Shown here: positions 1-52,215 of the stretch, piece after piece
Layout: each line of letters opens with the position of its first letter
Position numbering within the stretch: the first letter of the stretch is position 1
NCBI RefSeq assembly: GCF_964188315.1
Contig: NC_135667.1
Location: 16,492,001-16,556,000 of the forward strand
Source: Podarcis muralis
Lineage: Eukaryota
Length of the DNA: 64,000 bases
Reading direction: 5' to 3'
The notes under the pieces: generated by a model
The model's input: the letters and a program-made list of their open reading frames with translations, nothing else
Told to the model about the DNA's origin: nothing
The model's database searches: none
Position numbers and translations under genes: made by a program

Positions 1-1425
1 CTGGCGCCTTTACGGTGAGTCCTGCCTCTAGCATCATAGGGCTGATGAAATGCGGGGAGAGAGAAGGTTTATTTAAGGCAACTCCTTCTCATCTCCTACA
101 GGGGGTTCTCTGCATTAGAGTATCCCAAAATTGTTATTATAAACTGGAAATAAATCCTCTTCATCTGTCAGATTCTCAATTTCCAAACTCTAAGGCTTTT
201 CCCCTTGTTTATGGTTATTGAAAACTTAATAAAAATAGCTTTTCAGGATTCTGTGTTGTTCTGCAACAGCAATAGAGTATCATAATATAATTTCTCAGTT
301 ATTCTGTAGCATATCTCTGCAGCCTCCAGAATGTGTCCTACCTCCATCCACTGCAAGTCATACTCTGTTTCGTCTCTCTCTGTCACAGCATGAATATCAA
401 GGCCACACCGATTATATCCACTGCCTGGCCCTTCGAGACCAGCTCAGAGAGTGCCTGTCAGGGAGTGAGGATGGCACCGTGCGCCTTTGGGGTGAGGATC
501 TGCAGCCTCCTTGCCGCCTGCTGTTTCTCTGAGAGATCATCTCCCCATATAATCCCTGCCCCGTGCTTTAAAATCAGTTGGGCAGATCTCATCTGCATGC
601 CCCATCTCTGAAGGAAGCCAAATCTGAACCCTGTCAGGGTAGGGCCTTCTCAGTGGTGGTGACCCCGCAGTCCTGAAACAGGCATCTTGGTTACTTATGT
701 TCGCTGATTTGAATATGACTCGGGCAACATCCACACCATACATTTAAAGCGCTATGATACCTTTAACAGATATAAAAAACCCTGTGAACTGTAGTTGGTC
801 AACAGTGCAGGAAACTGTAGCAATGTGAAGTCAGCACTCTGAGCAAACTGCAGTTTGCAGGATTCTCCATGACTGTTAAAAGTGGTATCATCCTGCTTTA
901 AATGTATGCTGTGGATGTAACCCATCTTTGGGTATCAATCTGTGCCTTTTAAACTTCTGTGCTCTGTTATATGGCTAATGGTCGTAAGGTTGTTTGTTTT
1001 AACTTCTGGATTATATCTTGGATTCCATATTTGTTTGCTCTTAGAAGTTTCTTGAAAAGCAGGGCGGGTGTCACTTATTTAAAGCTGATTCAGAGGATAT
1101 CTTCAGAATGTTTGGGAACGAGCCAATGCCAAAGGGATCCCACTGCTCCATTTTCTTCCAATCTCTTTAGATGATCAGTTGCTGACACCCCCCTTGGCTT
1201 GTGTTCTAGGACTGGGATGGTGTATATGCAACACAGGAAGCTGCCTATATTGAGCCCTGTGGTCCATCTAGCAACATGTTGTCTATGGTTAATGGCAGTG
1301 GCTCTGTGGGGTTTCAGGTTGGGTCCCTCCCATCCCTTACTGGAAATGATGAGGATTGAACCTGGGTCTTACTGAATGCAAACAGATTGTCTGCCACTGA
1401 GCTACAGTTGACTAGACAAACCATG

Positions 1426-1460
<35 letters not shown>

Positions 1461-4400: not shown

Positions 4401-4889
4401 CTCCAGGCAAACGAGGCATTGTCAGAATTCCCAGCCAGGCAATAAAATAAAATAAAACAAATCACTCAGGGAAGGGTGCAAAGCCTTGGGTGAGGGCCTG
4501 GCCTGGGAAGGAGGTGTGTGACTGGAGAAGGAATGTGGCCCAGGGAGAATCCCAAGGATCAGAGACCTGGAGGACTGGATGTGGTCCCTGGCCCTGAGGT
4601 TCCCCAGCCCTGGGCTTGAGTACTTGGTTTTCTGCTGGGCAGAACAATGGTTTTGTTTCCGTGGCTGGTGATGGTGGGGAGCAAAGCAAGAGAGAAGGGG
4701 TGGGCAAGGTTACAAGCAGAGCGGGTGGGGCAGTGGGTGGGCCTTCCGCTGCCCCATACCTGATAAACCTCTTCCCTCTCATCTTCCCTTCCTCTTCGCC
4801 TTCAGGTGCTGACAGCTGCCGGAAGCAGCCACCGCATCGACGTCTTCACCAACTTTGGTTACCGGGCCTTTTCCCTCACCTTCTCTTAA
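1..4889 (+). CDS. THOC6: THO complex subunit 6 (WD40), 3' part of gene; 5' exons lie before the window
   Basis: In-phase GT-AG exons at <1-14, 389-491, 1464-1513, 2265-2327, 2846-2956, 3393-3521 and 4806-4889 (TAA). They translate to ...[21 protein letters not shown]...[68 protein letters not shown]...FYQDL/ILSAG...[30 protein letters not shown], closely matching the recalled human THOC6 C-terminal half. Confidence 0.97.
1427..1457. repeat. (CT)n microsatellite forming the polypyrimidine tract of a THOC6 acceptor
   Basis: The CT run ends 6 nt before the 1464 exon start. Confidence 0.9.
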
Positions 4890-5833
4890 GGCTCAGGCGA
4901 TTCCGTTTCCATAAACTGGTGCTGTTCAAGGAGTGCCTGGGCAGGACAGGCAGCCCCACTCGATAGGCTGCTGCGTTCAGGGATGGGTGAGCCACAGCTA
5001 GCTGGACTGTCAGTTGGGAAAAGGAGGCTCTTCACTAAGGAAAAAGAAACCCCTGGACCTGCTTGGGCATGAACTTCATGGGTTTTAAAGTTGGGGGGGG
5101 GAATGAAAGGAATTGGGAACTGTGTTTATTGTAACTAGCAACCCCCAATTCCACAGTCAGGATAAACCTTACATCACAGGCAAGAAGCTGTTAAATCTAT
5201 TTCGAGTTAAATGCATTAAAACAATTTTTTTAAGACTGAAATATGGATGCCCTCAGAATGTTTGTTGCTATGTCTTTGTCCTATCCTTCATTTGAGGAAG
5301 CATACGGAGTTCCCTTCTTGTTCTCTCAAAAATCTTGTGTAAGGTAGGTGAATCCAAGAGGCAATGGCTGACACAATGTTCAGCTTTGTGGCAGAACTTG
5401 AACTTGGGTCTCTCCAGTCCAGCACTCAAGCCTGGAGACAGGGATTCAAGGGCCCTCTAGTCAGGTGGACTACAACTCCCATCATCCTTGACCATTGGCA
5501 GTGCTGGCCTGGAGTGCTGGAAGTTTTAGTCCCACAGCATATGGAAGGCTATCGGTTCCTCATCCTGGCGAGCCATCACACCACAGTGACTCATACGGAG
5601 CTGATGGGAGAAGGTGGGCAAAAATGTCAAGGAGCAGTTCAGATGTCCTCTCTGTTTGACATCCTTCTGTGATCTTTCATCTGACTTTGCCCAAATGCTA
5701 TTCAGTTTGTTACCTCTGTGGTCATGAGGCCTGGAATCTGGAATTGTAGGAAAGCTATGGCAGAATGGCCAGTTCCATGCTGCGTGGACCAATGCTTTTC
5801 TGGATTTCTAGTCCTTCACACAGGACTCGGCCT

Positions 5834-8800
5834 TTACGCTTCGGATATCTCCACCTCCTCATACATATGCTCCTCCTGCATCCTCTTCAGCTCCTTCAGA
5901 TCTTCCCGGTGATTTTCTTTAAACTCCCGGAGAGCCGCCATCTTCTCAAACTCTCCAGTGGCACAGTGGTCCTGCCGTTCAGGATCCGGCAGAAGGTATC
6001 CCACAGGATCGCCCAGCATCGCTTCGACCTCACGGCACAGGACCTCCAAGGCCAGGGGGCCATAGGTGGAGCTGCTGGATTTGTAGCGCCTGCTGAAGAG
6101 GTTGACGGGCCGCAGGAAGTAGTGCGGGAGGTTTCTCTTTGCGAGGGTGTGGCGTAGGAGCCTCAGGAGGGCTTCCAGGGAGGACAGTAGAGTCTCCCAC
6201 TGTTCCTTCTGCGGGTAGATTTCACAGCACCACAGCAAAATGGTCTGCAAGGGGAAGAGAGGAGGGAAATGTTAGGTCTTTGTGGCTCTTACGAGGTTCA
6301 ACAGCATGGGCAGCATCATATTGCTGACTCCTTGGCTACATTTTCCTCCATTTTGACTAGGAGCAAATAATAGGGCCTTGATATCAGGTTCCAAGTGTGT
6401 GAAAGAGGCCCCTGAGGGGATGGTAAACACTGGCCTGGCGACAGATAGCACTGCTTGCATTTCGGTTATTTTACCTCACCAGTCGGTGCAGCATTTAATT
6501 AGGAGGTTCACCTTGAGATGGTAGGAAGTCAAGATTTTGCCGTACTCTGGCGTCCATTTTGTCACGTTGACAAACTTAAGCAGTCTCAAAGCTGCCGCCC
6601 TCTGCCCGCCATCAGCGTCAACGTCCTCAAGAATCACAGTCTCGGCATGGCTGAAAGAGAGCCTGGGCCCAGAGAGAGATTGGCTCCATTAGAACACAGT
6701 GCTTATGGAAAAGAAAACAGTTCCTTAGTTGGATGAACTCTTAATAGCCCTCTTGGCTCCTATTGTTACTGCAGGAGGCAGAAATGAGATGGTATTAAAA
6801 AGAAAGGTTTGATATTTCAGTGGAAGCTTAACATATCTTGCCTTAAGATAAAAGGCCTTTTTTTGGCGGAGGGAAACCCCTTTGATTAAACTTCAGAAAT
6901 AAAAATTGAGCCAAAAGGTCAACTTTTGACTACTGAAAAAGTTGCCTGTTTCTGAATGCATGCCAAGCGCTGCTTTCCCACCAGAGAGTAACCTTTTGCT
7001 CCCTCCCGGCTGCTAAGTTTGTTTACTTTTTTTTACCTCCAAAATCCTCCCTTGGCTATCAGCTCTGGTCCAACTTCCTGAACGACGGCTGCTTTCCGGA
7101 GAAAGCTTTTCTTTTCGTTGGCCAGGTCCCCATCCCACCAGTCGGAAAGGTGGGCCAGGTCTTCTCTCAGCCACTGGTTGGAGAGCTTGAAGGCTCCCTG
7201 GATGGCAGGGACCAGCTTCACTGGGACAGTTTCAGTCCCTTCAAGGAAAACCAACTGGATGGCAGGACTCTCCAAATTCAGGGCCTCCAGTGTGATGTTC
7301 TCTGCATAGGGCACAGACAAAGCATGATTGCCCCCAGGAATCAAGGGGAAGGAACAATAAAGTTACTACATTTTTCATTTCTTCAATGCCTTTCTTGAGG
7401 GTTGTGGGAATACCTGCAGCAGTGTGCAGCCTATAAATCTTAATGGTAAACCAGTCATGGCATTGCAACAGTAATAGAAACAAGCAAACAAATAATAGCA
7501 AGGCAGTCCTGTTACTCTCCCAAGAATCTAAGAGGCTAGGTGATCAGAAATATTTTTATTTAAGTATAAAGTCTCCATTATACAGAAGGATAGGTGGCAG
7601 ATCTGTGATCTGGTTACCTGCCTCCGCTCCAGAAGAAGTCAGATTCTGTCCACAGCGCTCTTCCAATGCAATTTTAAAATCTATTCATATCTGACCGGTT
7701 AATTATTAAAGGAAGGTGTTGGCAAGGACAGTGCTCACTCTGATGTTTTTACATTTGAGGGAATCTGCAATAAACATATGTCTCAAAAATAGACTCACGT
7801 CTCATCGAGTTGTCTATCTTGGGTACACGGGAACGGAAGAGTTTTTGCCGGAAAACAGGATCTAATGGTCAAGGGGGAAATTCAAGGAATGCTGCTAAGT
7901 TCAATTATATATTTGGAAATAAGCAACCATAGGCCAAATCCAACCCCCCCCTTGCAAACGGCTTCTCCCAATGGGAAAATAATTTCTACATGTTTTTGGA
8001 CTTACCATTTTGCCGGGGATGGGTGCACTCTGGGAAGGAAGGAAAGAAAAGTTCGAGAACATGAGTTAATGGAGAATTGCAAATGGCCTGACATTCAGGC
8101 TCCCAAACCCCTACTCCATTGTTTCCTAAAAAGGATTGTTCTGCTTTGAATTACATGACAAGTGGAAATTCATTATAACGGGTGCAGCTTTTCTCAGCGT
8201 GGTGATATGATATTAAGCCTGTTGAATTTCCTCCTGTTGCATAAATATAGGCTACGTGTTCAGAACAAAGGCGGCAACCTGAATTTCTTTAGGATGGCTG
8301 CCAGGTCTCCTTAGAGGAAAAGCACCTGGAAGTCCAGGTATCTGAGGAATCGGATTGTGAGGTTTACAGAATAGCATGCTATAACGGGGGGAGGGTGTGT
8401 GTGTGTCTAACTCGCAAGTTTGGGAGTTCAATTTGTCCCTCCCTCAAGCAACCCTCAGACCAAAGGAAATGTTAGCACGCCACCTGCACTGACATGGCTG
8501 TACCTGGGTCCAAAGTGATTTCTATATGTCGGTGAAAGTCCTCCAAGATTTGGACAGGGTCCAGGTGGTGGTGACTGAGGCTTTCCTAGACGAAGAGAAA
8601 ACAAAGCGGGTCACTGGATTTTGCATCCTCTTGTGTTGGAGAAAGGAAAGCTGAGCTGGGGCTAAAAAGGTAAAGGTAAAGGTACCCCTGCCCATACGGG
8701 CCAGTCTTGACAGACTCTGGGGTTGTGTGCTCATCTCACTCAAGAGGCCGGGGGCCAGCGCTGTCCGAAGACACTTCCGGGTCACGTGGCCAGCGTGACG

Positions 8801-10041
8801 AAGCTGCATCTGGCAAGCCAGCGCAGCACACGGAACGCCGTTTACCTTCCCGCTGGTAAGCAGTCCCTATTTATCTACTTGCACCCGGGGGTGCTTTCGA
8901 ACTGCTAGGCTGGCAGGCGCTGGGACTGAGCAACGGGAGCACACCCCGCCGCGGGGATTTGAACCGCCGACCTTTCGATCAGCAAGTCCTAGGCGCTGAG
9001 GCTTTTATCCACTACACCAGTGTAAAACCCACACTCCCTGGCTGTGCTCACGCCAGCATAAATCACAACCTCAGACTACACCAGCCTAACTTTAGCTAGC
9101 ATCGTTTAAGACAGTGGAATTTTTACCAGCTTCCCATAGCTTGGATTGTTCTGCCCGTCTCTAGGTGGTATCACAGTATAAAAGGTACAATACAAATAAA
9201 TCAAGTTAAACAATCAAATCAGAAAACTGACTTAAAATGTGCGCTGAACATTCAGGTATCAGAAGTTCCACCAAGTTAATTATACCTGTATGATGGTAGT
9301 TCTAGTTCATATTGATATTCAGGAGGATTTTTCTTAATTGTTTTGTACCACTTCAAAATATTTATTTTTAGTTCTCTTTTTTGTGTGTATTTGTGTGTGA
9401 TACTTTTATAACTTTCCTAAACTGCTTTAAAGACTTTTTTGAAGTATTAAGTGGTATATAAACTACTTCTTCATCACCATCATCAGAATAACAATGGTGA
9501 TGATGCTGTCGAAATCTACCTTGCACTCATCTAAGAAATCCAGGTCTTCCTCGTCGTCCTCGTCCGCCAGGCGCTCCGCTTGCCGGTGGCAGTGGACTTC
9601 CACGTACATCTCCCCGAAAGCCTCGAGGTCCACAAGGACTTTGGTGCCCCAGCGAAGCACGGGCAGCCCTTGCTCGCGGAAAATGTAGGTGGGCAGCTTC
9701 TTTTCATAGCTGCCAGGCTCCTTGGCGATGCCCCCACTTGCGAGCGCCAGCTTGGGGTTATACCTCGCGGGGATGAGGAAGTCGAAACCGTTGGAACTCC
9801 CCTCCACTTGAAGGTGCAGCCCTTCCCTGTGGCTGCCGACCGGGATGGGGTCGTTGGGGTACAGCCCGGTGCTGGATTCATAGGCCCATTTTACCATCTT
9901 CTCCACCATGCTTTTTACCACGAAGAAATTCTTCCCGACCCTCCAGCCTTTCTCCCCGGACAGGAAGACCCTGTCGGCGTAGAACTGCTGCAGGATCGCC
10001 TCTCGCTGGCCGGGAGGATCCCCCTCCCCGCTCATTGCCAT
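5834..10041 (-). CDS. Mab-21 domain / cGAS-like nucleotidyltransferase-fold protein (MAB21L3-like paralog), ~497 aa, 6 coding exons
   Basis: Exons at 10041-9520, 8585-8504, 7861-7799, 7301-7037, 6662-6512 and 6244-5834, all AG/GT bounded and phase-compatible (0,1,1,2,0). ATG is in a strong Kozak context (TCCACCATGG). Motifs: VGSHREGL...NGFDFLIP (NTase GS..xFD), LDPVQILEDF, ESPAIQL, VKLVPAI, WRLSFSHAE, DVDADGG, TSYHLKTILLWCCE..P...W and LPHYFLRPVNLF, the Mab-21 C-lobe signature. Confidence 0.92.
8666..9018 (-). mobile_element. Sauria SINE in intron 1 of the Mab-21-like gene
   Basis: tRNA-like head with B-box, Sauria core and (ACCTTT)n tail. Confidence 0.9.
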
Positions 10042-10659
10042 GGTGGATCCCTCTGAAATCCTCCTCCTGCTGCCTGCCTCTCCTCCCTTCTCAGCTTTCA
10101 CTTTCCCTTCCTGCCGAGGTCTGTTCATTCACAGAGACTTTTGCTCCTGGCTGTGTCAGAGATGGGAAGGGGGTGGGACGCAAAAACCAGCTTTTAAACT
10201 TTCCTGCAAAGTGAAAGTGAACAGAGTTTTCCCCTCCTCCTCCTCCTCTTCCCCTGATAAACATTTTACGCAGATATTATTAGCCGAGCCAAACCATAAA
10301 CTGTGCTGGGCGCTCCCACTCATTTTCCTTCCTGGGAGGGGAAATGACAAGTGGGAAGAGTTAGAAGCCACACCAGAATTTCCTGGCTGGAAGCAATTCT
10401 CTAACATAGGAACCAGGCACCATGCCAGTGGATTTTCTACCCATTTTGCTGCCTGAGGTGACAGATGAGTTGATTCTTTCCCTCTTCCCTTTCCCTGGCC
10501 CATTCCAGACTGGCAAGGGGGCAGCATGCCTGAAGGCAGCAGGCCCAGCTTAGGGGGCAGAGGGCAGGTTGTGTGGCACACAACAGCTCCGTCATCATTC
10601 TGCCCCCCCCCCCATCGCCCACGGAGGGCTGGTTCCCTCATGGCAAGATGTGAAGTCAC

Positions 10660-11507: not shown

Positions 11508-13779
11508 CTATGGGCTGTTATTCTTGGTGTGTGGAGAGCCAGTGGATTGATCCCACCCTCCAATTCCTTCTTCTTTGTCCCAGTGGAAGCCGACAGCGCT
11601 GACCAAAGGCCCTGAGCGGCCGCTGATGTAGCGCAGGATGGTGTTTGGGAACAAAGGCTCAGCGTCGAAGGTGACCCCCAAACCGGAGCCAGCCCCGTAG
11701 TCAAAGACACGGCCGAGGTTGGTGCGGAAGGCAATATACTCCACAAAGCTTCCGAAGCGGCCCAAGACTTGCACAATGCCTTCTCCAGGAAACAGCGGCA
11801 TCACAGATTGGCTCCCTGAGGGGTTTCCTTCAATCCTGGACCACAGGCCGCCGTAGCGAACCTGGATGCTGCAGTGACAAGGGATGGATTGTGGTTAGTG
11901 AAGGCTGCCACCTTCTGAGGGACAGTGTTTAACAGCTGCATCTCAGATAGAAACCAAAGGACAACCACTTTTAATTACCACCCAGGTTTCGCCACCATAT
12001 CAGGCAATTTGTATATCATCAGTTCTCAGTCAGCAGGGAAATCGCACAGGAATTTCTGGGCCCAGTTCCACTAGATGAGAGCCTGGGGCTTGCATAAGTC
12101 TGTGTGTGGCACTTTGCAAATCCTGACAACCAGGTGAATGGGTCACCTGATGTCACTGTGATCTGATGTCAGGTGACTGACAGCTCGGTGGCCCCCCGCA
12201 AGGAGGTGGGGCAGATAACTGTCCTACCCACTGGCTGGATGCAGTACCCCCTGCGCTTCAGGGAGCTATGAGAATCCTGATAATCATCTGATCTTCCAGG
12301 TGAGTTGAAACAGGTCTCCTGACATCACTGTGATATCAAGCGATTGACAAGTCAGCAGCCCCCACCTCCCTGTAAAACTTGGCTGGATCAAATTCCCCAT
12401 TCCTGCTGTTTGTGGCTTGGGTCCTCTGCCCAACCCAAATCTAGTGGCAAGAACTACTCCTCTTCCCATAAAGCCTTTGCCCTATCACCCCCCAACAACC
12501 CAAAGAACTGAGCCTGGGTCAGATATAAACACAGTGGTACCTCTGGATGCGAACGGGATCCATTCCGGAGCCCTGTTCGCATCCAGAAGCAAACACAACC
12601 CGCGTCTGTGTGCACGTGGGTTGCGATTTGCCGCTTCTGTGCATGTGTGTGATGTCATTTTGACTGTGCATGCGCGAGCAGCGAAACCTGGAAGTAACGC
12701 ACTCTGTTACTTCTGGGTCGCCGCAGCGCGCAACCCAAAAATACTTATCCTGAAGCTACTTCAACCCAAGGTATGACTGTATTTGCCAAAAGCTTCTGTC
12801 TATCCTGTGGGTTTATCCAGCATTTTTCTTCTTCTTCTGTATTTACAGATGAGGAGTTACTTGGGAGGACTGAGCCCAAGCCCATGCTATCTACTCAGAA
12901 ACTTGCGCCACTGTTTTCAGTGACATTGTGGCCCCCCAGTCACTGAAGATCCCCTCTGCTAACCTTGCTGAATCTGCCACACACCGGTAGCACCCCAAAA
13001 GACATACAAACCTCAGTATATACTTGTTGTTTGCCTGTATCCGCAGAGCTGTTATGGGGCCATCCAGCTGATTCCTGGACTGGTCAAAATGTTCCCCACT
13101 GCTGCCGCCATATTCTCCCGAGTAAGACGAGGAACCTGCCTGGGCTGGATCCACAAAGGGGGATGAGCAACAGGTTAACAAATTAAAAGGCAGGTTGATT
13201 TAATCCATTATTGACCCTTTTCTCTAAACTCAAAAGTCCCAGAAGCTACAACCTTTCACTTCATCCCCTGGATCATTTTGCTTGCCGTTTTCTGAATCTT
13301 TTCCAACCTAGCAGCAGAGGCTGTTGCTTATTTTAAGCTGTGTGCATGCTATCCCTTGGAAGCCCATTCTTTCCCTCAAAGAATTCTGGGTCCTGTAGTT
13401 TGTTAAGAAGAAGAAGAAGAGTTTGGATTTGATATCCCGCCTTTCACTCCCTTTAAGGAGTCTCAAAGCGGCTAACAATCTCCTTTCCCTTCCTCCCCCA
13501 CAACAAACACTCTGTGAGGTGAGTGGGGCTGAGAGACTTCAAAGAAGTGTGACTAGCCCAAGGTCACCCAGCAGCTGCATGTGGAGGAGTGGAGACGCAA
13601 ACCCGGTTCCCCAGATTACGAGTCTACCACTCTTAACCACTACACCACACTGGCTCTCAGGGTTGCTTGGAATTGCATTGCTGTGAGGGATAAACTACAG
13701 GGCCCAGAATTCTTTGAGGGAAAGAATTGGCTTCAAATGAGATTTTAAGCCTTAGTCCAGTCTTGCGGCCAACACACAC

Positions 13780-13810
<31 letters not shown>

Positions 13811-13946
13811 CTCTGCTCCTCCTTGCAAATTATCACAACATTTCCAGATGCAAAATGCAGTAACAGCTAGCCCCCTTTGTGACCTTACCTGGACTACCAG
13901 ACACAACATCACGGAGAAGGAGGCTCAGGAGAATGAATACTGGCAT
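11508..13946 (-). CDS. ZG16-like secreted jacalin (beta-prism) lectin, 183 aa
   Basis: Exons at 13946-13889 (signal peptide MPVFILLSLLLRDVVSGSP), 13144-13012 (SSYSGEYGGSSG...NQLDGPITALRI) and 11868-11508 (IQVRYG..W...LFPGEGIVQV...LFPNTILRYISGRSGPLVSAVGFHWD), phases 1 and 2. Minus-strand AATAAA at 11458-11463. Strongly resembles ZG16; orthology versus paralogy is not resolvable here. Confidence 0.93.
12532..12779. mobile_element. Tc1/pogo-like MITE, family B, in ZG16-like intron 2
   Basis: CAGTGGTACCTC...GGTATGACTG-TA; related to 22797-23041. Confidence 0.75.
13406..13657 (-). mobile_element. tRNA-derived SINE with L2-type tail (Squam3-like) in the ZG16-like intron
   Basis: Minus strand begins GAGAGCCAGTGTGGTGTAGTGGTTAAGAG (A-box) and ends in a (CTT)n tail. 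Confidence 0.75.
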
Positions 13947-15962
13947 CTTGGAAGCTGAAAAGGGGAAGGTCTGGAGGGTTAAAAGAGACAAGATTACAGC
14001 TCACATGGGCTTATCATTTTCTTAACCAGATAGCAAAATGACTCGACTGTCACCTCTTCTCATGGCAATAGTAGCCTGTGAGAATCTGTGGCAGGGAATA
14101 TAGAATTTATGCAAGTCAAATCCAGATTTTTTATTTTAGGGGAGGGGGTGAGGCGGAAGCCATTGAAAGAGGGAATCATTCACTCCAAGAATAGTATTGA
14201 AAATAGCAAATACAATCCTCCAGGGTGGGTTTTTGTTTTTTTTAAATGCTCTCAAGCCACACTATTCTTTTAGAATCCAATTCTCTGTTTTCGGATGACT
14301 AAGCTCTGAATACAGCCTTGGGTGTATCAAACTTCTATTTTGATCAGTCAGAAAATGTCAGAAAAGTTTTCAAATGTCAGAAAAGTTTTCAAAGAAAAAA
14401 AATCACCTGAAGCTAAAGAATAAAACGCCATGTTAACGACAATGTATTAAAACACACTTTTTTTTAAAAAAAACACCCTAGGTTCTTTAGGCTGCAATCC
14501 TTACCTGGGAGCAAGTCCCACTGATGTTAATGGGGCTTACTTTTGAGTAGAGCTGTATTGGCTTTCGCTGTTACTGTTGTTTTTTAAACACCCTTGCTTC
14601 CTCCCCCTTGCTTCCATAGCCATTAAAAAAAGAGATATTTATTTATCCCATATTTTTTCCCCTTGAAAAATATTGAGAGATGCTGCATTATGTATAGCTT
14701 CAGCCTTACAATATGTCGCTTTGGTGAGCCTACTTACAGCAATACTTGTTTCTCCAGCAAAACTCCCGCAAATTACCTTGTTCAGGTAAGCGTAAGTGGG
14801 GTGGACCCCTCCTTGTGCCTTTGCTACATTAATGCCAAGAAGGCCTTACAAGTTCTTGAAACCTGCCACTCCTGCAGAAAATACAACCTTCTCTTTGAGA
14901 AAAGTGGTTCCTATTGGTTTGGCACCAGGTTATCTTACTCGGGGAGTTTCGTTTTACCTGCTTGTAGGCACCTGGGCTACCAAACAGTTCCTCTATTGTG
15001 ATCTAATATTTCCTCCTACCTGTTTGTTGTTCAGAGAGCTAAGCTGGATTCCAGAAATCAGAACAGAAATGTAATCAAAGGCTTCAACATTCTTTTTAGA
15101 AACTCCTGCAACAAATAAAGATATGGACATCTCCTTGCTGCCTAGGGTTAAAAACAAAATCTATTGCCGTGACATATTAGAAAATAGTCTTAAGATTTCC
15201 ATGCATGCAACTTAAAGAGCAATACTGTAAAGGCAACATAAATAATGGCACTCATCTCTGAACTTTGGAAACAGAAGGAATAATTTGCAATGAAATTTGC
15301 CAAATCTAAGGTTACCAATTTATCAAGAAAAACAAAGTGGTCTGGCCTGTTCATGTGCTTTTAACAGCAGTTTGGGGCAGCACAAAGCCAGCCGCTGGAA
15401 GTTTTTCAGGGCCTGCAGAAATGCACTTAAGCCCTTCTTAACTATTGAACAGGTCCTTTTCCAGAGAGCCAGAGGGCGAGGATTTGAAAACTGGCACCAA
15501 CATCTGGCATCTCTCCTCCAAATCTATAAAGACAAAACAAGCACAGTCTTCATCCGTGAAATGTCTCTGGGTCTGGTTCAGAGGTGTAGGAAGGTCAGGT
15601 GGTACCTGGTGCGGAAAATTTCTTGTCCCCCCCCCCCCCCCCGCCCCACATTGATTTATTATTATTATTTTTTTGCCTGCAAAAATGGTGTTACGTTATT
15701 TCATATTTTCTTACAAAGGAATGGATTCTGGGCCTCTGGTAACAAGTAGGCGACTATGGAGACATACTTAAATCTACAGGATGCATTGTGTTCGTGCCTT
15801 TCTACTACTTTAGCAACTCCTCCGCAAATACGGCAATATTTGGTCCTTTAAAAAATTTAATTATTATTATTCAGTTTTTAACAATATATAACAACGCATA
15901 ACACTTATACATTCTTATCTAGATAATACAGAAACAATTAAGAAACATTTCTGATTGAGATA

Positions 15963-29610: not shown

Positions 29611-32600
29611 TCAGTGTATCAGCGATTCCTGAGCTGAATGGCCTCCAGTCTCTTCAATTGGTGCTGGAAATAGAGAAGGCAAAGTTTAGCCATAAGTGTG
29701 GGGGCGGGGGGGGGGGGGCTCTGCTGTCGAGATGCTCCCAAGAAAGACTCCAGTTTAGGGTTAGATAACGGGAAAGAAGTGACTTACTGGTGAATTTCTC
29801 CCGCCGTCGGCAGCGGGCGTAGATTATGATGCCACCTATCAAAACCGCCAGAGTTAAGGCGCCCAGAGATGCTCCCACCATAAGCCACATATTGAAGTTG
29901 TCTGGGAGTTGAGGGTCTCCGCCTGCCAGAGAGAAGAGAGAGGGAAGGGTTAAAATCAGCCTGATCCGCTTCTGATCCCAGCACTTCCTCCTGGGGCTCC
30001 CCTCAGAAGAGAGTCTCTTAACAATTTGAACCAGACTTGTCTTCAACAACATCCCCTTTTCCTTCCCGCTAAACCATTTCCCACAAGGCCAGTCGCTTGA
30101 CCCACGGCTGGAAGAGGAACGAAACGGTGCCAAAAATAAAAAGTTGCAAATCTCAGCTTCGAATTCAGGCTGGGGGATGTCGCTGATCTTTTTCTTTTCA
30201 AGCCGCAGGCTTTTTGGGGACCAGATTTCAGCACACACTTATGCCAACTGGGGGGGTGCAGGAAGAAGAGAAGCAAAACAAACCCCCAAACAAAAAAAAT
30301 AATGTTTTTCAAATTCTCTTTCTATGTATATTTGAAATTTGTTCCTTCTTTCTCTGGATTCATGCCAGCTTTTATGTACCCACCATACACACACAGGCAC
30401 AGAGTCCTGCAGCCTTCAGTGTCAGTGTGGTGTAGTGGGTAGAGAATGTTAGATTAGGGCCCGGGTTCGAATCTCCATTCAGCCATAAAGCTTGCTGGGT
30501 GGAGGGGTGACACCCAGGCCCATCACTATCTTATAGCCAGAGCTGTTGTGAAGGCAATGGAAGGAAGGGCATGGAATAGAGAGGGGTTCGGTGCAGATCA
30601 CCCTTGCAGGTGGAAAGCTACCATTCCTGGTTTCCTGCCCTTAGTCCCCTTCCACCCCCCCCCCAAAAAAAAATCCCGGTTCTACTCTCACAAATGGCTT
30701 GTCGATATAAGAAGTCAACGCAGCTGGAGCAACCCAAGGTTCCCGCCCCAATGCATGGTGGGTAAGGGTAGCTGTCAGCCACTCACATGTGGTGCAAAAG
30801 TCATTCTTGTTTTGACGCTGGCAGACAGAGCAGTCCATGCATTTTTCCAGGTCTGGGCTCCAAGACTGGCCTCCGGGGCACACGGAAGCTGGGGGGGGGG
30901 GGGAGAGAGAGAAAAGGAAAATTTAGGCAGGAGCCTCTTGGCTGTGGAAGCACGGACATCTGTATCAGCCTAAAATTCCTCACAGGGTTGTGAGGATAAA
31001 ATGGGGAGAGTTACATATACCACCTTGAGCTACTTTGAGGAAAAAGTTGTTGTTGTTAGGTTGTTGTTATGGCTATTATGGCTATTATTATGGCTGGGTT
31101 TCCCAGCCACTCTGGGTGGCTTACAGCATACAGTGGTACCTCGGGTTACAGACACTTCAGGTTACAGACTCCGCTAACCCAGAAATAGTGCTTCCGGTTA
31201 AGAACTTTGCTTCAGGATGAGAGCAGAAATCGTGCTCCAGCAGCGCAGCGGCAGCAGGAGGCCCCATTAGCTAAAGTGGTGCTTCAGGTTAAGAACAGTT
31301 TCAGGTTAAGAACGGACCTCTGGAACAAATTAAGTACTTAACCCGAGGTACCACTGTATATAAAAACATAATGAAACATCAAACTTGAAAAACATGAACG
31401 TTGCTAGTGTATACAGGTGTTTTGGTAAGTCACATCCAGCAGGTTTATACCACTGTAAGAGTCATGACTCCCCCCAGTGCAAGAATCCTGGGAACTGTAG
31501 TTTACCCACATACAGAGAGCTACAATTCCAAACACCCTTAACTATGGTTCCCAGCAAAGGTGCCAACTTGAATAAAATATGGGGGGGGGGGGGCAGGTAA
31601 GCCCTGCCCCACATAATTGATCACATGATGTGACACACACTATTTGAATGGAAATGCCCATCAACTTTCGGGGGGGGGGAATGGCCCCCTCAAATATTTT
31701 AGGGGGGTGGCGAAGGACCTCAGCCCCTAGGAGTTGGCTCTATGTTCCGTGGGGGGGAAGCCATGGGTGTTAAAGTGGTATGAAAGTGCTTTAAATGGAT
31801 GGTGTGGATGTGACATCCGTGTTGGCAGGCTCTGCTGCCCTCCCAAACCAGCTTGGAAAGGCTATAATCCAGGGAGAAATGAAGGGGTTTGGGGGGGGGC
31901 GGGATTCGCAAACAGGCTTCTGTGGAAGCCAGGCCCGCTGGGCTCATTGCAGCCTCTGGACTCCAGAGCAAATCGCGGCTTAGGAGGAGCGCGCTGTAAA
32001 AGGAGCCGGGATGGGAGGGAGAGAAAGACGATTAGGAGGAAGCTGAATGAATGAAAGCGACCAAGCGACAAGTCAGAACATGAAGACGCTTAACAGCTGA
32101 ATGAAAAAGAAGAAAAAGATCCATACACGAGGCTCTCCTGTCCCTCCCTCCCTCCCATGACATGAGGGTCTATTTCCAGAGGGGTAACGTCAGTAGGGAA
32201 AGGGGTGTCGTGTTTCGCCCCGAAACCTGAACCAGACCCGAGCAGCAGCAGGAGAGCATCGGGGGGTCAAGACTGAGAGCATCACGTGGCGAAGTTGTGG
32301 CGCGGGGGAGGGCAAGGACCCCCCTCCCCCCTTTCAAGTGACTTCATTGATAAAATATGCCCCGTGCAAGCGAGCAAACAGATGGCGCCGGGCCCAGAAG
32401 TGGAACGAAAGAGAAGGGGGGGCGGAGCCGGTGGGTGAGTCACCATGTGGGTCGCCTGATGCAGCGGACGTCAGATTTCGCTCTCCCCACCCCCCAGGCC
32501 CCCAATTGTCCGCTGCCCGGATCCTGCTCTCCTGTCCCAGTTTTCTCACTTGTGACTCGCGGGGAAAAAGGAAACTTTCACCCGCAAGGCAGCCAATGGG

Positions 32601-45811: not shown

Positions 45812-47628
45812 AGACACACTCCATGCTTGTTTCCTCAGAAGTAAGTCCTACTGTGTTCAGTAGGGCTTCCTTGTAGGAGGCAAGTGTGCTGTCACAGCTT
45901 CTATGTTGAGGTGGGGAACCATTTTTCCAGCCCGAGGGCCACGTTTCCATCTGGGAAAGCTTTTGAGGGCCACACGCCAGAGATAAACACAGACGGAGCG
46001 GCAAATGTAAATTTTGCCTTTAGGGGTCATAGGGACAGAAGTCCCTTCAAAAGATGATTAAGATGTTTATATATGTTACAACGGCAGCTAGGATTCTCTG
46101 TGCACAAAAATGGAAATGAGCCACTCTAGAAGAACGGATAAGCGAGGCGATGGATTGCGCAGAATTGGCAAAGCCAACAGCTAAAATAAGAGAACCTAAT
46201 GACGAAGGTTTTGTGGAAGAACGGAAACCCATTTCGGATTATTAAAGAAGTATTATTATATGGTGAACGTGTGAGCAGGATTTGAACTATGAGCAACAGA
46301 CGGGATCTAAGATTCCAGCAGTTTTGTTAAGGTTTAGGAGATAGTAGACAGGATGCAGCAGAGGGAGAGGAACAGAAACACCATGGAAAAGAGGAAGGGG
46401 AATTGGGGCAGAGTTTTTATTGAAATGTATGTGTGAAATTCGTGGGGGGGGGGGACCCAAACTTTTACCCTCTTGCACCCCTGGTCTATTCTTGATCCAG
46501 GCAAGCAAAAGGCCTTATGAGAGTTCAAGGACACATTCCCAGCTGGGCAAAACAACAGTCAAGGGGAAGGGTGCCAGGCAGGGCCAATAAGGATGTAGCC
46601 AGGGAGAGTTCTGAGGGCCACATAGAGAGGGTTGGAGGGCCCCGTTTTGCCCCAAGTTTGCCACCTCTGCTCCATGAGGAGGAGCTTTTGTTGACTTCGG
46701 CTCCTCCACATGGAGGACTACGACTCCCATCACCAAGAGCTAATGGGAACTGGAGTCCAAAACATCTGGAGGGCACCAGGTTGGCTGACGCGGAGAAGAC
46801 GGCAGTCTAATTTGAGAAAGCAGAGGAAGTCAAAGCCAGAGGGTGGGGAGAAGGGTGGTCCATCAGGGGGATGCCGAGGGCCCACATCCATGCAGCTGTG
46901 TGGAGGCGTTAGCTCTGGCAGCTATTCCCATCTCTCTCGGGAGTTTCATTTCAGCTTTCCCTTTGTCTGCGGCCGGCCTGTTCCGTGCAGGGGACTTTCT
47001 GATAATGTGGAACCAAAAAAACAACCCCTTTCCCCCCCCCCCAAAGCAGAACACAAGAGGCAGAACAGATTGAAGAGGACGAAGGAGAAGACGGTGGACA
47101 AACAGAAGAACTGAAGTGTCAAGTCGACTCTAGAGGAAAAGGTAAAATTAAAACTGGCAGCATCAGAGTTATATTTTATGCTTCTCAAGGGGCCTTTTTA
47201 TCGTTGGAGACAAAAGTGGATGTTTCGTCTCTGCACACATGGGGGAAGTGAGTGCAGGCGGGAAACAAAAAGGCTGTCAAAGGCATTGTGTTGGGGGGGG
47301 GCTGAAAATGATGAGTGGTTGCTTAAACAGGGGCTGTTAGGGTCTGTCCTCAATGGGCAACACAGGGAAGTGAGTGTGGCCCTCCCAAATGGCCACTGTC
47401 AGGGAGGCTCTTGCAGGACTAGTCTTGCTAACTTGCCTGCAACCCCACAGCTCCACGGCCAAATCCTCAGTCCTTTGCAGCCCTGCTTCCTTCTTCCTAG
47501 AGAACCCAGGAGTCCGGCTTTCTACCTTAACCCTGTCCTCATACAGATTTCAGGAATCCGAAGACAGAACCCAATTCTGAAAAGACACAGGCTTGGCTTA
47601 ATTTAAGCCTAGGCTTAGCCCCAGAAGA

Positions 47629-47633
47629 ACACA

Positions 47634-47686
<53 letters not shown>

Positions 47687-47697
47687 TCACTCACTCA
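47629..47697. repeat. (CA)n/(CACT)n microsatellite
   Basis: Direct observation. Confidence 0.9.
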
Positions 47698-47858
47698 GTG
47701 TTAGAATCATAGAATCATAGAATCATAGAGTTGGAAGAGACCACAAGGGCCATCGAGTCCAACCCCCTGCCAAGCAGGGCTTAAGTTCAGTGCCAGGGCT
47801 TAAGTCCTGGAACAAAATGAATGTTTCTGAGCATGTGTTGAGTGCTTTTTACTCCCTG

Positions 47859-47861
<3 letters not shown>

Positions 47862-47904
<43 letters not shown>

Positions 47905-48510
47905 TATTATTTATACCCCGCCCATCTGGCTGGGTTTCCCCAGCCACTAGGCGGCTTCCAACTGAACATTAAAAACAATACAGCATTAGACATTAAAAAC
48001 TTCCCTAAAGAGGGCTGCCTTCAGTTGTCTTTTAAAAGTAAAATAGTTGTTTATTGCCTTGACATCTGCTGGGAGGGCGTTCCACAGGGCAGGCGCCACT
48101 ACCAAGAAGGCCCTCTGCCTGGTTCCCTGTAACCTTACTCCTCACAATGAGGGAACCGCCAGAAGGCCCTCGGCGCTGGATCTCAGTGTCTGGGCTGAAC
48201 GATGGGGTGGAGACGCTCCTTCAGGTATACAGGACCGAGGCCGTTTAGGGCTTTAAAGGTCAGCACCAACACTTTGAATTGTGCTTGGAAAAGTACTGGG
48301 AGCCAATGCAGATCTCTCAGGACCGGTGTTATGTGGTCCTGGCAGCCACTCCCAGTCACCAGTCTAGCTGCCACATTCTGGATTAGTTGTAGCTTTCGGG
48401 TCACCTTCAAAGGTAGCCCCACATAGAGCACATTGCAGTAGTCCAAGCGGGCGATAACCAGAGCATGCACCACTGGTGAGACAGTCCGCGGGCAGGTAGG
48501 GTCTGCAGCT
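47862..48510 (-). mobile_element. L2-clade LINE 3' fragment with (ATT)n tail
   Basis: ORF LVIARLDYCNVLYVGLP...LHWLPV...FKVLVLTFKALNGLGPVYL; AAT microsatellite tail at 47862-47903. Confidence 0.88.
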
Positions 48511-50183
48511 AGACTCCTGGCAGCCTGCATTAGGATGAGAAGGGAAGAACTGGAGTGTTTGTTGCAGATGATGATTTTTCATAAGACCCTGGAGTTTTCT
48601 GGGTCTTGTTTTATAGGGTAAAACCCAAGAGATATTTGGAACCAGGTTTACTGGATAAGGGTCTTTGTGTCTTATATAACATAATAGAATTGTTAGAAGT
48701 ATGTGTCTGAACCCACATGCGTGTACATCACTCACATGTATTCATACACACACTTTTAAAGAGGTTTGCGATATTTCGTTGTAATTATAATGTGCATCTG
48801 TTTTTTGAATATGTGCGTCACCCTTAACCGTACGCCCACAAGAAATTCTTATACAAAGGGATAAAGAAAGCTTGTTTTATTCTATGAAATGAAAGCAACA
48901 GAATAACAGCAAAGTTACAATTTAAGCAGGCAGCAAATCCCACAACACAAACCTTGAACTAAAGAGGGGGAGAATGCCTACATATTCTCAAAAGCCTACA
49001 GAAGTGAGCATGAAAAAATTGTCCCAGAACTCACACTTCTTAATAAAAGTTAAGAAATGCCAATGACTACAAATCTCAGGGTTCCTTACAGCCTTTTCTT
49101 CATGGAGAAAGGAAGGGGCCCTTCAGATGAACATTTCTATCGCCTTTTCCTTGCAATTCCTGCTCAGCTTCATCTCTCCCATCTTGCAAATTAATTGTGT
49201 TAAAGAAAACCACCTGGTGGGTGTTGGCTAAACAAACCGGCATCCTTTGTTTGCTTGCTGCCTTCAAACCATCTCACCTTTATCTTGATGGCCCCATTCA
49301 GGTGGTGAATAGACTACACTGGCAACTAAAGTTACACGTGCTCACCTTTATGCAAGGTGTGAGGAACACAATATGTTTCCTGAATGCCTTCAGGACATGG
49401 TTTGAGACCGGGCTGGTACCAGGGTTGCAAAAGTTCATGATGGAGGGTCTCCTGTCATTTTAGAGTTATGTCAGTTTTCTTGCCTGTGCCATGACCTACA
49501 TCACAGAATAAGTTCAGATTGACACACGATCCTATGTTTGAAGTGCTTTGAATAATATTTGGAGGATATCTGGCTGGTGTAGATATAGGCAGGAGAAATG
49601 GGGCAGAGTCCAGAGAAAGGCAAAACAGAGATTTAACACATAGATTATGATTAATAACAGTAAGATAATAATAGCCCAACCTGCAAGTGAGATGCAGGGT
49701 CAATCTTGTTGGAAATCCTTCATTTTAAAGTGACGCCTCGATAATAATTTATCATCTAAAAGCCATAGAGCAGGTGTGGGAAATGTTTGGCCTTCCAGAT
49801 GTTGCTGAACTACAACTCCCACCACCCCTTCCCATTGGCCAGGTTTGCTGAGGTTGCAGGAGCTGTAGTTCACCAATATGTGGTGGACCAATGGCTCCAC
49901 ACACCTGTCACAGAACATTAGTGTAGGTACTTAAAAGGACCGGGGCACTAAATAGTCTAAAGAAATTTCAGTAGTAAAGGGTGGGAGTGGATGATCCTGG
50001 AAAGAAGCTGGACCAAATTCTGTAGACCCACCACCCCAATGTGCCTGAAAAAATACCTGCCACCTCCCCACCCCACCCCCTGTGCCTCTCATAGGTGTGG
50101 CACAGGCACAAACCCAAGAGGTTAGGCCTTTCCTAGCATAAAGATGCTGTAATGGGGGAAACGTCATTTGATGAATTTCTGTA

Positions 50184-50425
50184 CAGTGGTACCTCAGGTT
50201 ACATATGCTTCAGGTTACATACGCTTCAGGTTACAGACTCCGCTAACCCAGAAATAGTGCTTCAGGTTAAGAACTTTGCTTCAGGATGAGAACAGAAATT
50301 GTGCTCTGGCAGTGCGGTGGCAGCAGGAGGCCCCATTAGCTAAAGTGGTGCTTCAGGTTAAGAACAGTTTCAGGTTAAGAACGGACCTCTGGAACGAATT
50401 AAGTACTTAACCTGAGGTACCACTG
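50184..50425 (+). mobile_element. Tigger/pogo-like MITE, family A, ~220 bp upstream of the connexin-like acceptor
   Basis: Same TIRs and TA TSD. Confidence 0.9.
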
Positions 50426-50649
50426 TATTATGTATTTGTTAAATGCACAAAGGCCCTAAAAACCAGTTTTTAAAAATGTACATGTGAAAAAAGAAGCAGC
50501 AGTGCCCTTCATTCAAAACAAAACAAAAAAGCCTATTGGCCATTCTTAACTCTCTCAGGCCTCTGAAGACCACAGAGCAACCAACTTTTGCACAATCATG
50601 TTTAGAAAGGAAACTCATTTTCTTCTCATCTCTTCCCTTCTCTCAGCAG

Positions 50650-51423
50650 ATGGCTGCTGTGGTCGCCGGCCTGGCTCGTCTCCTACAGCCAGCCATGATG
50701 TTCCCTGGAGGTGAGCCTGGCTGCCGAGGCCTGGCCCCCTGGTATCTCCTTCTGGGGCTACGGCTGGTGGCCCTTTTCATCGCCGACGGGCCCTGGTCCT
50801 CTCCCAACCCCGACCTGGTCTGCAACTGGACCTCGGTGGAGGCGGACAGTCGGCCTTTCTGCAGCGCACTCTGCTTCAACCGCCACTTTCCTGCTCCCGT
50901 CTCCTCGGCATGGGGTTTTGCCTTTTTGGCTGCCCTGCTCCCAGTGGGGCTAATGGGGCTCATAAGGACTGGATCCAAGCACCGGAGAAAGGCGGCAAAG
51001 GAAGGAGACGAGGAGCTCACTGACATCACTAGTGTGAGCCACGACATGGCCGCCGGATCCAGCATGGCTCCCGGAATGATTCCTTTGCCCAAAATGGTTC
51101 CGTCGGAATCCAAGATGTCCCCCCGTTGTACCTGGCCCTCAGCGGCCTTCGTTTTCTGTGTGTTTCTCCTCCTGGCCACGGAGCTGGGCTTCTTCTGGGT
51201 TGTGATATTTCTGCAGATCCCATCAGTGCTTCGCACCACCTTCTTATGCCTTCCAGGAGCACGCTCCTGCCCTGAGGCACTCGAATGTGCCTTGGCAGGC
51301 CAAGCCGACAAGCACATGGCACTGTGGACGTTGGCTTTCACAGCTATTGTCAACATGGCGGCTTGCCTGGCCTACCTTCTCCTGACTCTAGGGAGGGCTT
51401 CCCGATGCCACAGAGGAAAATAA
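50650..51423 (+). CDS. Highly divergent connexin-like tetraspan protein, 257 aa, single coding exon
   Basis: A polypyrimidine acceptor (tcttcccttctctcag) lies just before the ATG, as in typical connexin genes. Four hydrophobic segments and 3+3 extracellular Cys: C58-x12-C71-x3-C75 and C200-x6-C207-x5-C213. Conserved TM1 Arg, pre-loop Trp, TM2 Trp/Pro, TM3 Glu and loop-2 Lys. The ORF-track start at 50536 lies upstream of the acceptor. Confidence 0.85.
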   Translation: MAAVVAGLARLLQPAMMFPGGEPGCRGLAPWYLLLGLRLVALFIADGPWSSPNPDLVCNWTSVEADSRPFCSALCFNRHFPAPVSSAWGFAFLAALLPVGLMGLIRTGSKHRRKAAKEGDEELTDITSVSHDMAAGSSMAPGMIPLPKMVPSESKMSPRCTWPSAAFVFCVFLLLATELGFFWVVIFLQIPSVLRTTFLCLPGARSCPEALECALAGQADKHMALWTLAFTAIVNMAACLAYLLLTLGRASRCHRGK

Positions 51424-51858
51424 CAGAGCCAAAGAAGAGAGCAGGGCCAGCCCACCCATGAGGCAAGGTGAGGTGACCGCCTCACACAGCAGGATCCACA
51501 TGTTCCTGAGGTAGATCTTCACTCATTTTTCCCTGGTGGGGATGGGAGCGGTTTGCCTTCGGTTGCAAAATTTATTGAGCTGGCCCTGGAGAAGAGAATG
51601 CAAGAAAGTGGACTGTGAAGGAGAACAATGACATATTCCAGAACTGCCCATCCACATGGATTATTAACACGTCGGGGAACTTTTATCAGCATTTTAGTCT
51701 GAATTTCTACCAGTAAACATACATTTATATGCAGTTTTGACTTATGCACATGTTTTTGCAAGGTCATCATGCATACAGTATTTGTATGCCATTTTTACTA
51801 ACATGTTCGTTTTTGTAATGCATTTTGGTAACCATTTGTTTACTACATCCTAAAATAT

Positions 51859-52215
51859 GGACGCGGGTGGCGCTGTGGGTTAAAGCCTCAGTGCCTAGGA
51901 CTTGCCGATCGAAAGGTCAGCGGTTCGAATCCCCGTGGCGGGGTGCGCTCCCGTCGTTCGGTCCCAGCGCCTGCCAACCTAGCAGTTCGAAAGCACCTCC
52001 GGGTGCAAGTAGATAAATAGGGACCGCTTACCAGCGGGAAGGTAAAGGGCGTTCCGTGTGCTGCGCTGGCTCGCCAGATGCAGCTTGTCACGCTGGCCAC
52101 GTGACCCGGAAGTGTCTGCGGACAGCGCTGGCTCCCGGCCTATAGAGTGAGATGAGCGCACAACCCTAGAGTCTGTCAAGACTGGCCCGTACGGGCAGGG
52201 GTACCTTTACCTTTA
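51859..52215 (+). mobile_element. Sauria SINE just downstream of the connexin-like CDS
   Basis: 15-bp TSD CCTAAAATATGGACG; same subfamily as the copy at 8666. Confidence 0.94.

Follow-up and report, generated by a model that had tools for sequence, protein, structure and literature searches.

A sauropsid lineage of zeta-type connexins with a conserved glycosylation sequon in the first extracellular loop: candidate single-membrane channels

A 64,000-nucleotide stretch of the Podarcis muralis genome (assembly GCF_964188315.1, contig NC_135667.1, positions 16,492,001 to 16,556,000; hereafter the window) contains, at 50650-51423 on the forward strand, an intact, uninterrupted open reading frame (ORF) encoding 257 amino acids (ATG at 50650, TAA at 51421-51423). 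The protein is 97% identical to Podarcis muralis LOC114582367 and is almost certainly a connexin of the zeta (GJZ) subfamily. Its sequence places it as a squamate member of a second, unnamed zeta lineage that is sister to the group named gjz1. The data as a whole are best explained, and in our judgement probably so, by a two-exon zeta connexin gene whose product would be a glycosylated channel of a single membrane. The novelty lies in the second, sauropsid-expanded zeta lineage; the subfamily itself was already named in 2022 and is functionally uncharacterised.

The window protein is a very divergent connexin. It matched the connexin profile PF00029 with 43.7 bits against a gathering cut-off of 31.3 (residues 32-244, profile positions 25-221 of 225), which upholds the connexin call of an initial annotation made from the DNA alone. 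Similarity to solved connexins was weak (E ~1e-3 for Cx26 with phmmer), and no innexin or pannexin Pfam match to the protein was detected, even at E values up to 10. An AlphaFold2 (AF2) model built from a 58-sequence family alignment had a predicted local distance difference score (pLDDT) of 84 and a predicted TM-score (pTM) of 0.76. It comprised an N-terminal helix, four long helices, a short strand and helix in the first extracellular loop (E1) and a hairpin in the second (E2), the individual elements being helices at residues 2-16, 29-49, 65-79, 84-127, 162-194 and 218-256 and strands at 56-58, 197-200 and 211-215. The best 50 matches listed by a Foldseek search of the PDB were all connexins (Cx43, Cx26, Cx46, Cx50 and Cx32), each at probability 1.0, and their target TM-scores ranged from 0.66 to 0.77. 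Both three-cysteine loops are present in the modelled protein, and its fold is the four-helix one of connexins. C58, C71, C75, C200 and C213 were invariant in the family alignments, and C207 was at least 90% conserved. The parts of the coding sequence (CDS), with transmembrane segments denoted TM, are as follows.

50650..51423 (+): complete CDS, 257 amino acids plus stop, zeta-type connexin; from the ORF and PF00029
50653..50697 (+): N-terminal helix, residues 2-16; from the AF2 helix and alignments
50734..50796 (+): TM1, residues 29-49, with invariant W31 and R38; from AF2, regional dN/dS and invariant columns
50797..50898 (+): loop E1, residues 50-83, with C58, C71 and C75 and with S51-P52-N53 in place of D-E-Q
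50824..50832 (+): sequon N59-W-T, the sole N-glycosylation sequon of the protein
50899..50979 (+): TM2, residues 84-110, with S86 at the R75 position and W88 and P98 retained
50980..51132 (+): cytoplasmic loop, residues 111-161, of low model confidence and fast-evolving
51133..51231 (+): TM3, residues 162-194, with near-invariant E178 (homologue of Cx26 E147) and invariant F181
51232..51300 (+): loop E2, residues 195-217, with C200, C207 and C213, E209/A210/E212 for N176/T177/D179, and G217 for R184
51301..51420 (+): TM4 and very short C-tail, residues 218-257, with D220 and K221 homologous to E187 and K188

The N-terminal helix, hydrophobic and with R10 as its sole Arg, bears the family motif MAA-V-GL. 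Both hallmarks of the zeta family were found in the protein, namely MAA-x-V-x-GL (here MAAVVAGL) and a sequon, C-N-W-T, between the first and second cysteines of E1. Short x-M-A/x-M-x repeats occur in the cytoplasmic loop. The C-tail, initially put at about 9 residues, is at most 10 residues long in the AF2 model, where the TM4 helix extends to residue 256. Within it C253 is retained by most sauropsid orthologs and is absent from Eublepharis.

Assignment to the zeta family rests on profile searches and trees. A profile search returned fish and amphibian proteins named 'gap junction protein zeta 1 / gjz1' with E values of 1e-60 to 1e-80. Distant relatives were found in coelacanth, caecilian, gar, sharks and rays, sturgeons, teleosts, frogs and salamanders, two birds and monotremes. 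An exhaustive phmmer search gave 38 representative clusters; outside the zeta family, those examined (about 10 short hits aside) included just one protein, a canonical-looking connexin (P0062, E 9e-5). Membership of GJE1, GJC3 or GJD4 was rejected on the same set of hits. The initial annotation had proposed a functional but repurposed connexin class. The functional part of that proposal stands on the Pfam match, the predicted fold, the intact ORFs, dN/dS and splicing described here; the class itself is not an unrecognised one, as relatives already bear the name gjz1.

Maximum-likelihood trees, a quick one of 54 rows and a careful one of 43 rows, with a single canonical outgroup sequence, split the family in two. 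Support for the split was moderate (ultrafast bootstrap (UFBoot) 93, Shimodaira-Hasegawa-like approximate likelihood-ratio test (SH-aLRT) 60), and one split was found in 100% of 200 bootstrap trees. The gjz1 group comprised gjz1-named proteins of teleosts, bowfin and bichir together with proteins from gar (250 residues), sturgeons, amphibians, caecilian (245 residues) and monotremes. The second group comprised coelacanth, gar (216 residues), sharks and rays, caecilian (223 residues) and a fully supported (100/100) sauropsid clade that includes the window protein. Because both groups include a gene of gar and a gene of caecilian, the window gene is a paralog-lineage relative of zebrafish gjz1 and not its one-to-one ortholog.

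The gjz1 gene was first reported by Lukowicz-Bedford et al. 2022 (PMC9073686), who placed it as the outgroup to other connexin proteins, listed it as expressed in the nervous system with no phenotype known, and stated that it is 'conserved in mammals'; in the literature searched, gjz1 was mentioned only there. Among mammals we could confirm zeta members in monotremes only. No therian member was found, and a search seeded with the echidna protein recovered only that protein, the word-index search used being of limited sensitivity. The vertebrate connexin phylogeny of Mikalsen et al. 2021 (PMC7914757) left out predicted sequences whose cysteine patterns were improper, along with some oddities confined to one species, and the odd cysteine pattern probably accounts for the absence of the zeta group from it.

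The extracellular loops depart from the canonical connexin spacing. As the initial annotation had noted, E1 reads C-x12-C-x3-C (C58, C71, C75) and E2 reads C-x6-C-x5-C (C200, C207, C213), compared with canonical C-x6-C-x3-C and C-x4/5-C-x5-C. All 25 close orthologs had 10-14 residues between the first two cysteines of E1 and 6 at the corresponding place in E2; basal members of the lineage had 7 and 4. The N59-W-T sequon was likewise found at the place first reported. Recurrence in 25 of 25 close orthologs puts these features of spacing and sequon far beyond chance. In one respect the first description has to be corrected: it had put the sequon inside the segment inserted in the lizard protein. 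The sequon Asn directly follows the first cysteine of E1 (Cys1), aligns with Cx26 N54 and is present in members that lack the insertion (C-x7-C), so that C-N-x-S/T is older than the sauropsid insertion. Its occurrence was as follows.

Squamate and turtle orthologs: sequon at Cys1+1 in 25/25; any sequon between Cys1 and Cys2 in 25/25
Basal proteins of the second lineage (C-x7-C): at Cys1+1 in 10/11; any in 11/11
gjz1-group proteins: at Cys1+1 in 95/102; any in 101/102
Core family in total: at Cys1+1 in 130/138; any in 137/138

In frogs, a salamander, the gjz1-type protein of caecilian and the 216-residue protein of gar the sequon was shifted by 2-3 residues within the same Cys1-Cys2 loop, examples being C-R-G-N-D-T and C-D-V-N-A-S. 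Thirteen different residues occupied the X position, and the third position was Thr in 122 proteins and Ser in 10. Because X varies, Ser and Thr interchange and the sequon relocates, this variation reads as the signature of selection on the sequon itself, for glycosylation and not for a structural Asn-Thr pair. The E1 sequon appears from these alignments to have been conserved or positionally replaced across about 450 million years of the family's history.

Residue correspondences with Cx26 were fixed by phmmer alignment to Cx26 chains and are listed here with the lizard residues first.

W49-S50-S51-P52-N53: Cx26 W44-G45-D46-E47-Q48; DEQ lost, now SPN
D55: Cx26 D50; kept
C58-N59: Cx26 C53-N54; kept
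S85-S86-A87-W88: Cx26 I74-R75-L76-W77; R75 lost as S86
W88 and P98: Cx26 W77 and P87; kept
R38: Cx26 R32; kept
E178: Cx26 E147; kept
L199: Cx26 K168; lost
E209-A210-L211-E212: Cx26 N176-T177-V178-D179; mostly changed, D179 to E conservative
A216-G217-Q218-A219-D220-K221: Cx26 S183-R184-P185-T186-E187-K188; R184 lost as G217
D220-K221: Cx26 E187-K188; kept (conservative)

The alignment confirmed the replacements first read from the DNA (DEQ by SPN, IRLW by SSAW, SRPTEK by AGQADK), and with them the joint loss of the network partners, as well as the retention of the TM1 Arg (R38), the TM3 Glu (E178), the TM2 Trp and Pro (W88 and P98) and all six cysteines. In Cx26 the E47/R75/R184 ring is nearly invariant among human connexins, lies within the most highly conserved connexin region and has been implicated in Ca2+ binding and in the transition from hemichannel to junction (PMC7455182). 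The lizard protein has P52, S86 and G217 at these positions, and of the extended E47/R75/R184/E187 network only D220 and the neighbouring K221 remain. The R75 and R184 positions were also occupied by residues other than Arg in the six members whose alignments were inspected (coelacanth, caecilian, ray, sturgeon, cichlid and echidna). Loss of the network thus appears common to the inspected zeta members and not a novelty of the lizard.

The docking surface is altered at further sites, all in E2: K168 is replaced by L, N176 by E and T177 by A, and D179 conservatively by E. N54 and D179 are critical docking residues in Cx26, and the replacements H54 and T179 have been proposed as the main explanation for the confinement of Cx31.3 to hemichannels (PMC7455182). 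According to a 2023 review of connexin diversity (PMC10598745), Cx26 N176Y gives free hemichannels and the equivalent residue of Cx32, Asn175, is critical for docking. The lizard protein retains the N54 equivalent as the Asn of its sequon.

Coding sequences were compared as DNA for the window gene and the orthologs of Zootoca, Rhineura, Anolis, Varanus, Pantherophis, Eublepharis and Eretmochelys. All 8 sauropsid CDSs were intact, and pairwise ratios of nonsynonymous to synonymous substitution (dN/dS, omega) by the NG86 method were 0.18-0.40. The window gene is under purifying selection. Regional omega values were as follows.

TM1: 0.09, the most constrained segment
E2: 0.19
TM4: 0.21
E1: 0.23
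Cytoplasmic loop: 0.46
C-tail: 0.85

This pattern of constraint is the one expected of a working membrane protein. Word-indexed and exhaustive searches found orthologs, 97-50% identical and named 'uncharacterized protein', in all major squamate groups, turtles and alligator, and the ORF was intact in at least 25 sauropsid species.

The gene is transcribed and spliced, and it covers at least 46892-51471 on the forward strand. Spliced contigs came from three RNA-labelled runs (X1, X4 and X5) belonging to three studies, and they define the following features.

46892..47141 (+): non-coding exon 1, minimum extent, the 5' end possibly reaching further; RNA contigs
47142..50646 (+): intron of 3505 nt, GT..AG, acceptor tctcAG|CAG ATG
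50647..51471 (+): exon 2, minimum extent, comprising 3 nt of 5' untranslated region, the whole CDS and the start of the 3' untranslated region; RNA contigs

Contigs of X1 and X5 cover 46892-47141 and 47016-47139 of exon 1, from where they continue at 50645/50648, and the donor at 47141|47142 reads AAAAG|GTAAAA. The splice joint 47139>50645 (cut +2, GT..AG) was present in contigs of X1 and X4 and was spanned by record 17 of X5. Exon 2 was covered over 50645-51475 by contigs of 855, 891 and 576 nt (X1, X4 and X5, respectively), and overlapping contigs ran to ~51863. The layout, with a non-coding first exon and the CDS within one exon (splice 47141|50647), is that of a classic connexin gene. The frame leading into exon 2 holds an in-frame TGA 9 codons upstream of the junction, which makes the ATG at 50650 the start; an upstream coding exon or longer N-terminus, as in the Pogona and Tiliqua database models, was rejected on account of this TGA.

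The RNA contigs, which carry the same species label, differed from the window at 14 CDS positions, 7 synonymous and 7 non-synonymous, and these differences spared every cysteine, the sequon and all invariant sites. They lie at, for example, 50962, 51077, 51262-51263, 51346, 51401 and 51415, and several match residues of the Podarcis muralis protein (M143T, R205H, I233V and S251F). The window and the RNA may derive from different lineages or populations. The word depth of the RNA contigs, when summed, was in the thousands, up to ~200,000, at 47579-48563, 50140-50533 and 51859-52100, where many contigs had loose ends; one of these stretches ends ~115 nt short of the exon 2 acceptor. Such depths around exon 2 are consistent with dispersed repeats or transposable elements.

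Of the mechanisms considered, a glycosylated, non-docking channel is the best supported, although we put its chances of being right and wrong at about equal. Subunits would assemble into an oligomeric pore of connexin type, and N59 in E1 would be N-glycosylated in the endoplasmic reticulum. By homology to N54, N59 would be exposed at the apex of the loop, and a bulky N-glycan on an apex residue that makes a hydrogen bond in trans should be incompatible with head-to-head docking. The glycan, together with the altered docking residues of E2 (N176/T177/D179 to E/A/E), would then prevent docking and leave a hemichannel-type channel of a single membrane, following a logic like that of pannexins. 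With the E47/R75/R184 salt-bridge and Ca2+-tunnel network absent, gating and control by extracellular Ca2+ would be expected to differ from those of canonical connexins. In pannexins, loop glycans prevent docking, as stated in a paper (PMC8769644) that cites Ruan et al. 2020.

Several points weigh against this reading. RNA contig word depth over the gene was low (7-15) and one bulk RNA run had no reads on the CDS; taken together these suggest that expression is probably restricted to certain tissues. The source runs were labelled 'RNA?', their kind having been guessed, so a processed DNA copy is possible. The sequon was absent from monotreme proteins, from a 272-residue alligator protein and from most sauropsid B, C and D paralogs (described below), and is therefore dispensable in some lineages. 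The root of the family tree depends on a single outgroup branch of great length. Extracellular sequons do not keep seven innexins from forming gap junctions (PMC8769644), so a sequon by itself does not exclude docking. Glycosylation of N59, surface delivery, oligomerisation and conduction are all steps that we infer from the sequence.

The loss of the Ca2+-tunnel/salt-bridge network, which has been called the best-conserved portion of connexins, could also point to a protein that forms no plasma-membrane pore at all and acts instead as an adhesion or scaffold protein, as a channel of intracellular membranes, or as a modulatory subunit with its tandem paralogs or other connexins. An N-terminal helix without an acidic voltage-sensing residue, a C-tail of ~10 residues and seemingly low expression would suit such a role, and the two tandem paralogs nearby, with very different loops and tails, are possible partners. 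We nevertheless consider it unlikely. The segment under the strongest constraint here is TM1, whose counterpart in known connexins lines the pore, and the R38/E178 pair, W88 and P98 are retained; because of this conserved TM1 and framework, a pore-forming protein is favoured over a purely non-channel role. The predicted conserved lumenal glycan and the three disulfide-forming cysteines of each loop also suggest a folded extracellular domain exposed at the surface.

An ordinary gap-junction connexin with an unusual docking surface would leave the sequon unused or tolerate its glycan, and the enlarged E1 and E2 would provide private, self-only docking with no heterotypic pairing. The six loop cysteines and the secondary structure of E1 and E2 are kept, both loops are under the purifying selection expected of an interaction surface, and D179 is replaced conservatively by E212. 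Some sequon-bearing innexins form junctions, and the same is reported of zebrafish Cx23, with only four loop cysteines, in PMC10598745. Against this, the sequon occupies the position of the docking Asn in the alignment and is kept or relocated within the loop in all core family members except one, E and A stand at the positions of N176 and T177, and both Cx26 N176Y and Cx31.3 N54H/D179T are associated with hemichannel-only behaviour. Such docking therefore strikes us as improbable.

A decaying or neutrally drifting connexin relic, a pseudogene or an ORF open by chance is effectively refuted and has a negligible probability: the divergence from canonical connexins is strong, and the dN/dS range is unremarkable by the standard of membrane channels (a canonical connexin was not measured alongside), but orthologous ORFs are intact throughout sauropsids and in all eight species checked as DNA, dN/dS lies well under 1 and constraint on the TM segments far exceeds that on the cytoplasmic loop and tail, spliced transcripts exist, and cartilaginous and bony fishes have relatives.

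The sauropsid paralogs fall into at least four groups. The window gene belongs to a short 'A' form, which has clear orthologs in squamates as a whole; the 'B' form is marked by a tail rich in Cys and Gly and the 'C' form by a ~300-residue cytoplasmic loop; and a further group comprises turtles, birds and crocodilians. Orthology of the short forms of turtles and alligator to squamate A is not secure. The three Zootoca genes of forms A, B and C (L001, L008 and L009) lie on the same strand of one chromosome record within ~107 kb. The 257-residue form is followed ~46 kb downstream by a 406-residue form with the Cys/Gly-rich tail and, ~58 kb beyond that (~105 kb from A), by a 573-residue form that has the ~300-residue cytoplasmic loop, with a run of poly-Lys following TM2. 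The E1 sequon is missing from the 406- and 573-residue forms alike. No tandem paralog was found within the 64-kb window, where tblastn searches with P0032 and P0027 hit only the 50650-51423 ORF.

Crocodilian and turtle paralogs (P0031, P0064, P0035 and P0029, up to 833-1261 residues) carry many tandem x-N-M-A-A/T repeats in the cytoplasmic loop, and a short echo of these is seen at 51046-51120 of the window, with DMAA, SSMA, PKMV and SKMS at residues 133-157. A 616-residue protein of Pelodiscus sinensis (P0028) contains two complete connexin domains in tandem and probably represents two neighbouring genes merged by annotation. In Eretmochelys imbricata (L007) the gene upstream of the connexin, at 1-8232 on the reverse strand, combines Sushi, VWA and Trypsin domains as complement factor B/C2 does, and a second connexin gene of 311 residues lies 2.3 kb downstream at 13118-15215 on the forward strand. 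This hints that the turtle connexin sits in a neighbourhood like class III of the major histocompatibility complex. Among ten other long ORFs of the window, a Pfam scan gave only one match, below threshold: the ORF at 29657-30238 (-) matched the tumour necrosis factor (TNF) receptor domain of TNFRSF12A (Fn14; PF12191) with 23.7 bits, under the cut-off of 24.9, and may be an exon of a TNF-receptor gene. The ORF at 9466-10128 (-) had no Pfam match at E ≤0.01.

Connexins are generally described as non-glycosylated proteins that dock across two membranes. The 2023 review (PMC10598745) covers subfamilies A to E only and never mentions glycosylation. If the proposed mechanism is correct, 'hemichannel-only' signalling would be an ancient, dedicated connexin function kept for ~450 million years and not a side activity, and glycan-blocked docking would have evolved independently in connexins and pannexins. 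The lack of therian members in our searches may explain why there is no functional literature on the zeta family. We put forward, as a tentative generalisation that is somewhat more apt to fail than to hold, that the zeta connexins are the connexin family's own 'pannexins', with an obligate N-glycan on the docking Asn and no Ca2+-sensing ring, forming single-membrane channels only. The family would be ancient, spread across jawed vertebrates and confined among mammals, in these searches, to monotremes; in sauropsids it would have expanded in tandem, with some paralogs shedding the glycan and gaining giant, repeat-rich cytoplasmic loops.

The closest known system is teleost gjz1 (zebrafish Cx26.3). 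Both proteins carry the MAA-(I/V)V-GL motif and C-N-x-S/T after the first cysteine of E1, both have lost the counterparts of R75 and R184, and both are ~230-260 residues long with a short C-tail. Identity is only ~24-30%, however, and the window gene belongs to the sister lineage. Relative to gjz1, the sauropsid proteins have an insertion of 5-7 residues in E1 (C-x12/14-C compared with C-x6/7-C) and an E2 that is 2 residues longer (C-x6-C compared with C-x4-C), and their genes lie in a tandem cluster of diverged paralogs.

Human GJC3 (Cx31.3/Cx30.2) is a non-docking connexin, a property ascribed to changes at Asn54 and D179 on the basis of cryo-electron microscopy (PMC7455182); in the lizard the same Asn would be altered by a predicted glycan. 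The two are not closely related. GJC3 has canonical cysteine spacing, the E47/R75/R184/E187 network and no loop sequon, whereas the lizard protein keeps the Asn inside a sequon and has lost E47, R75 and R184. GJE1 (Cx23) is, like the lizard protein, an outlying connexin with atypical loop cysteines, and mouse Cx23 is reported (PMC10598745) to form hemichannels and not junctions. Cx23 has four loop cysteines and a multi-exon CDS, in contrast to the six cysteines and single coding exon of the lizard gene. The likeness to the pannexins (PANX1-3) is one of functional analogy only. Pannexins are large-pore channels with four TM segments, in which a conserved loop N-glycan prevents the docking of two channels; they are unrelated to connexins, being innexin homologues, and have two cysteines in each loop compared with three in the lizard protein.

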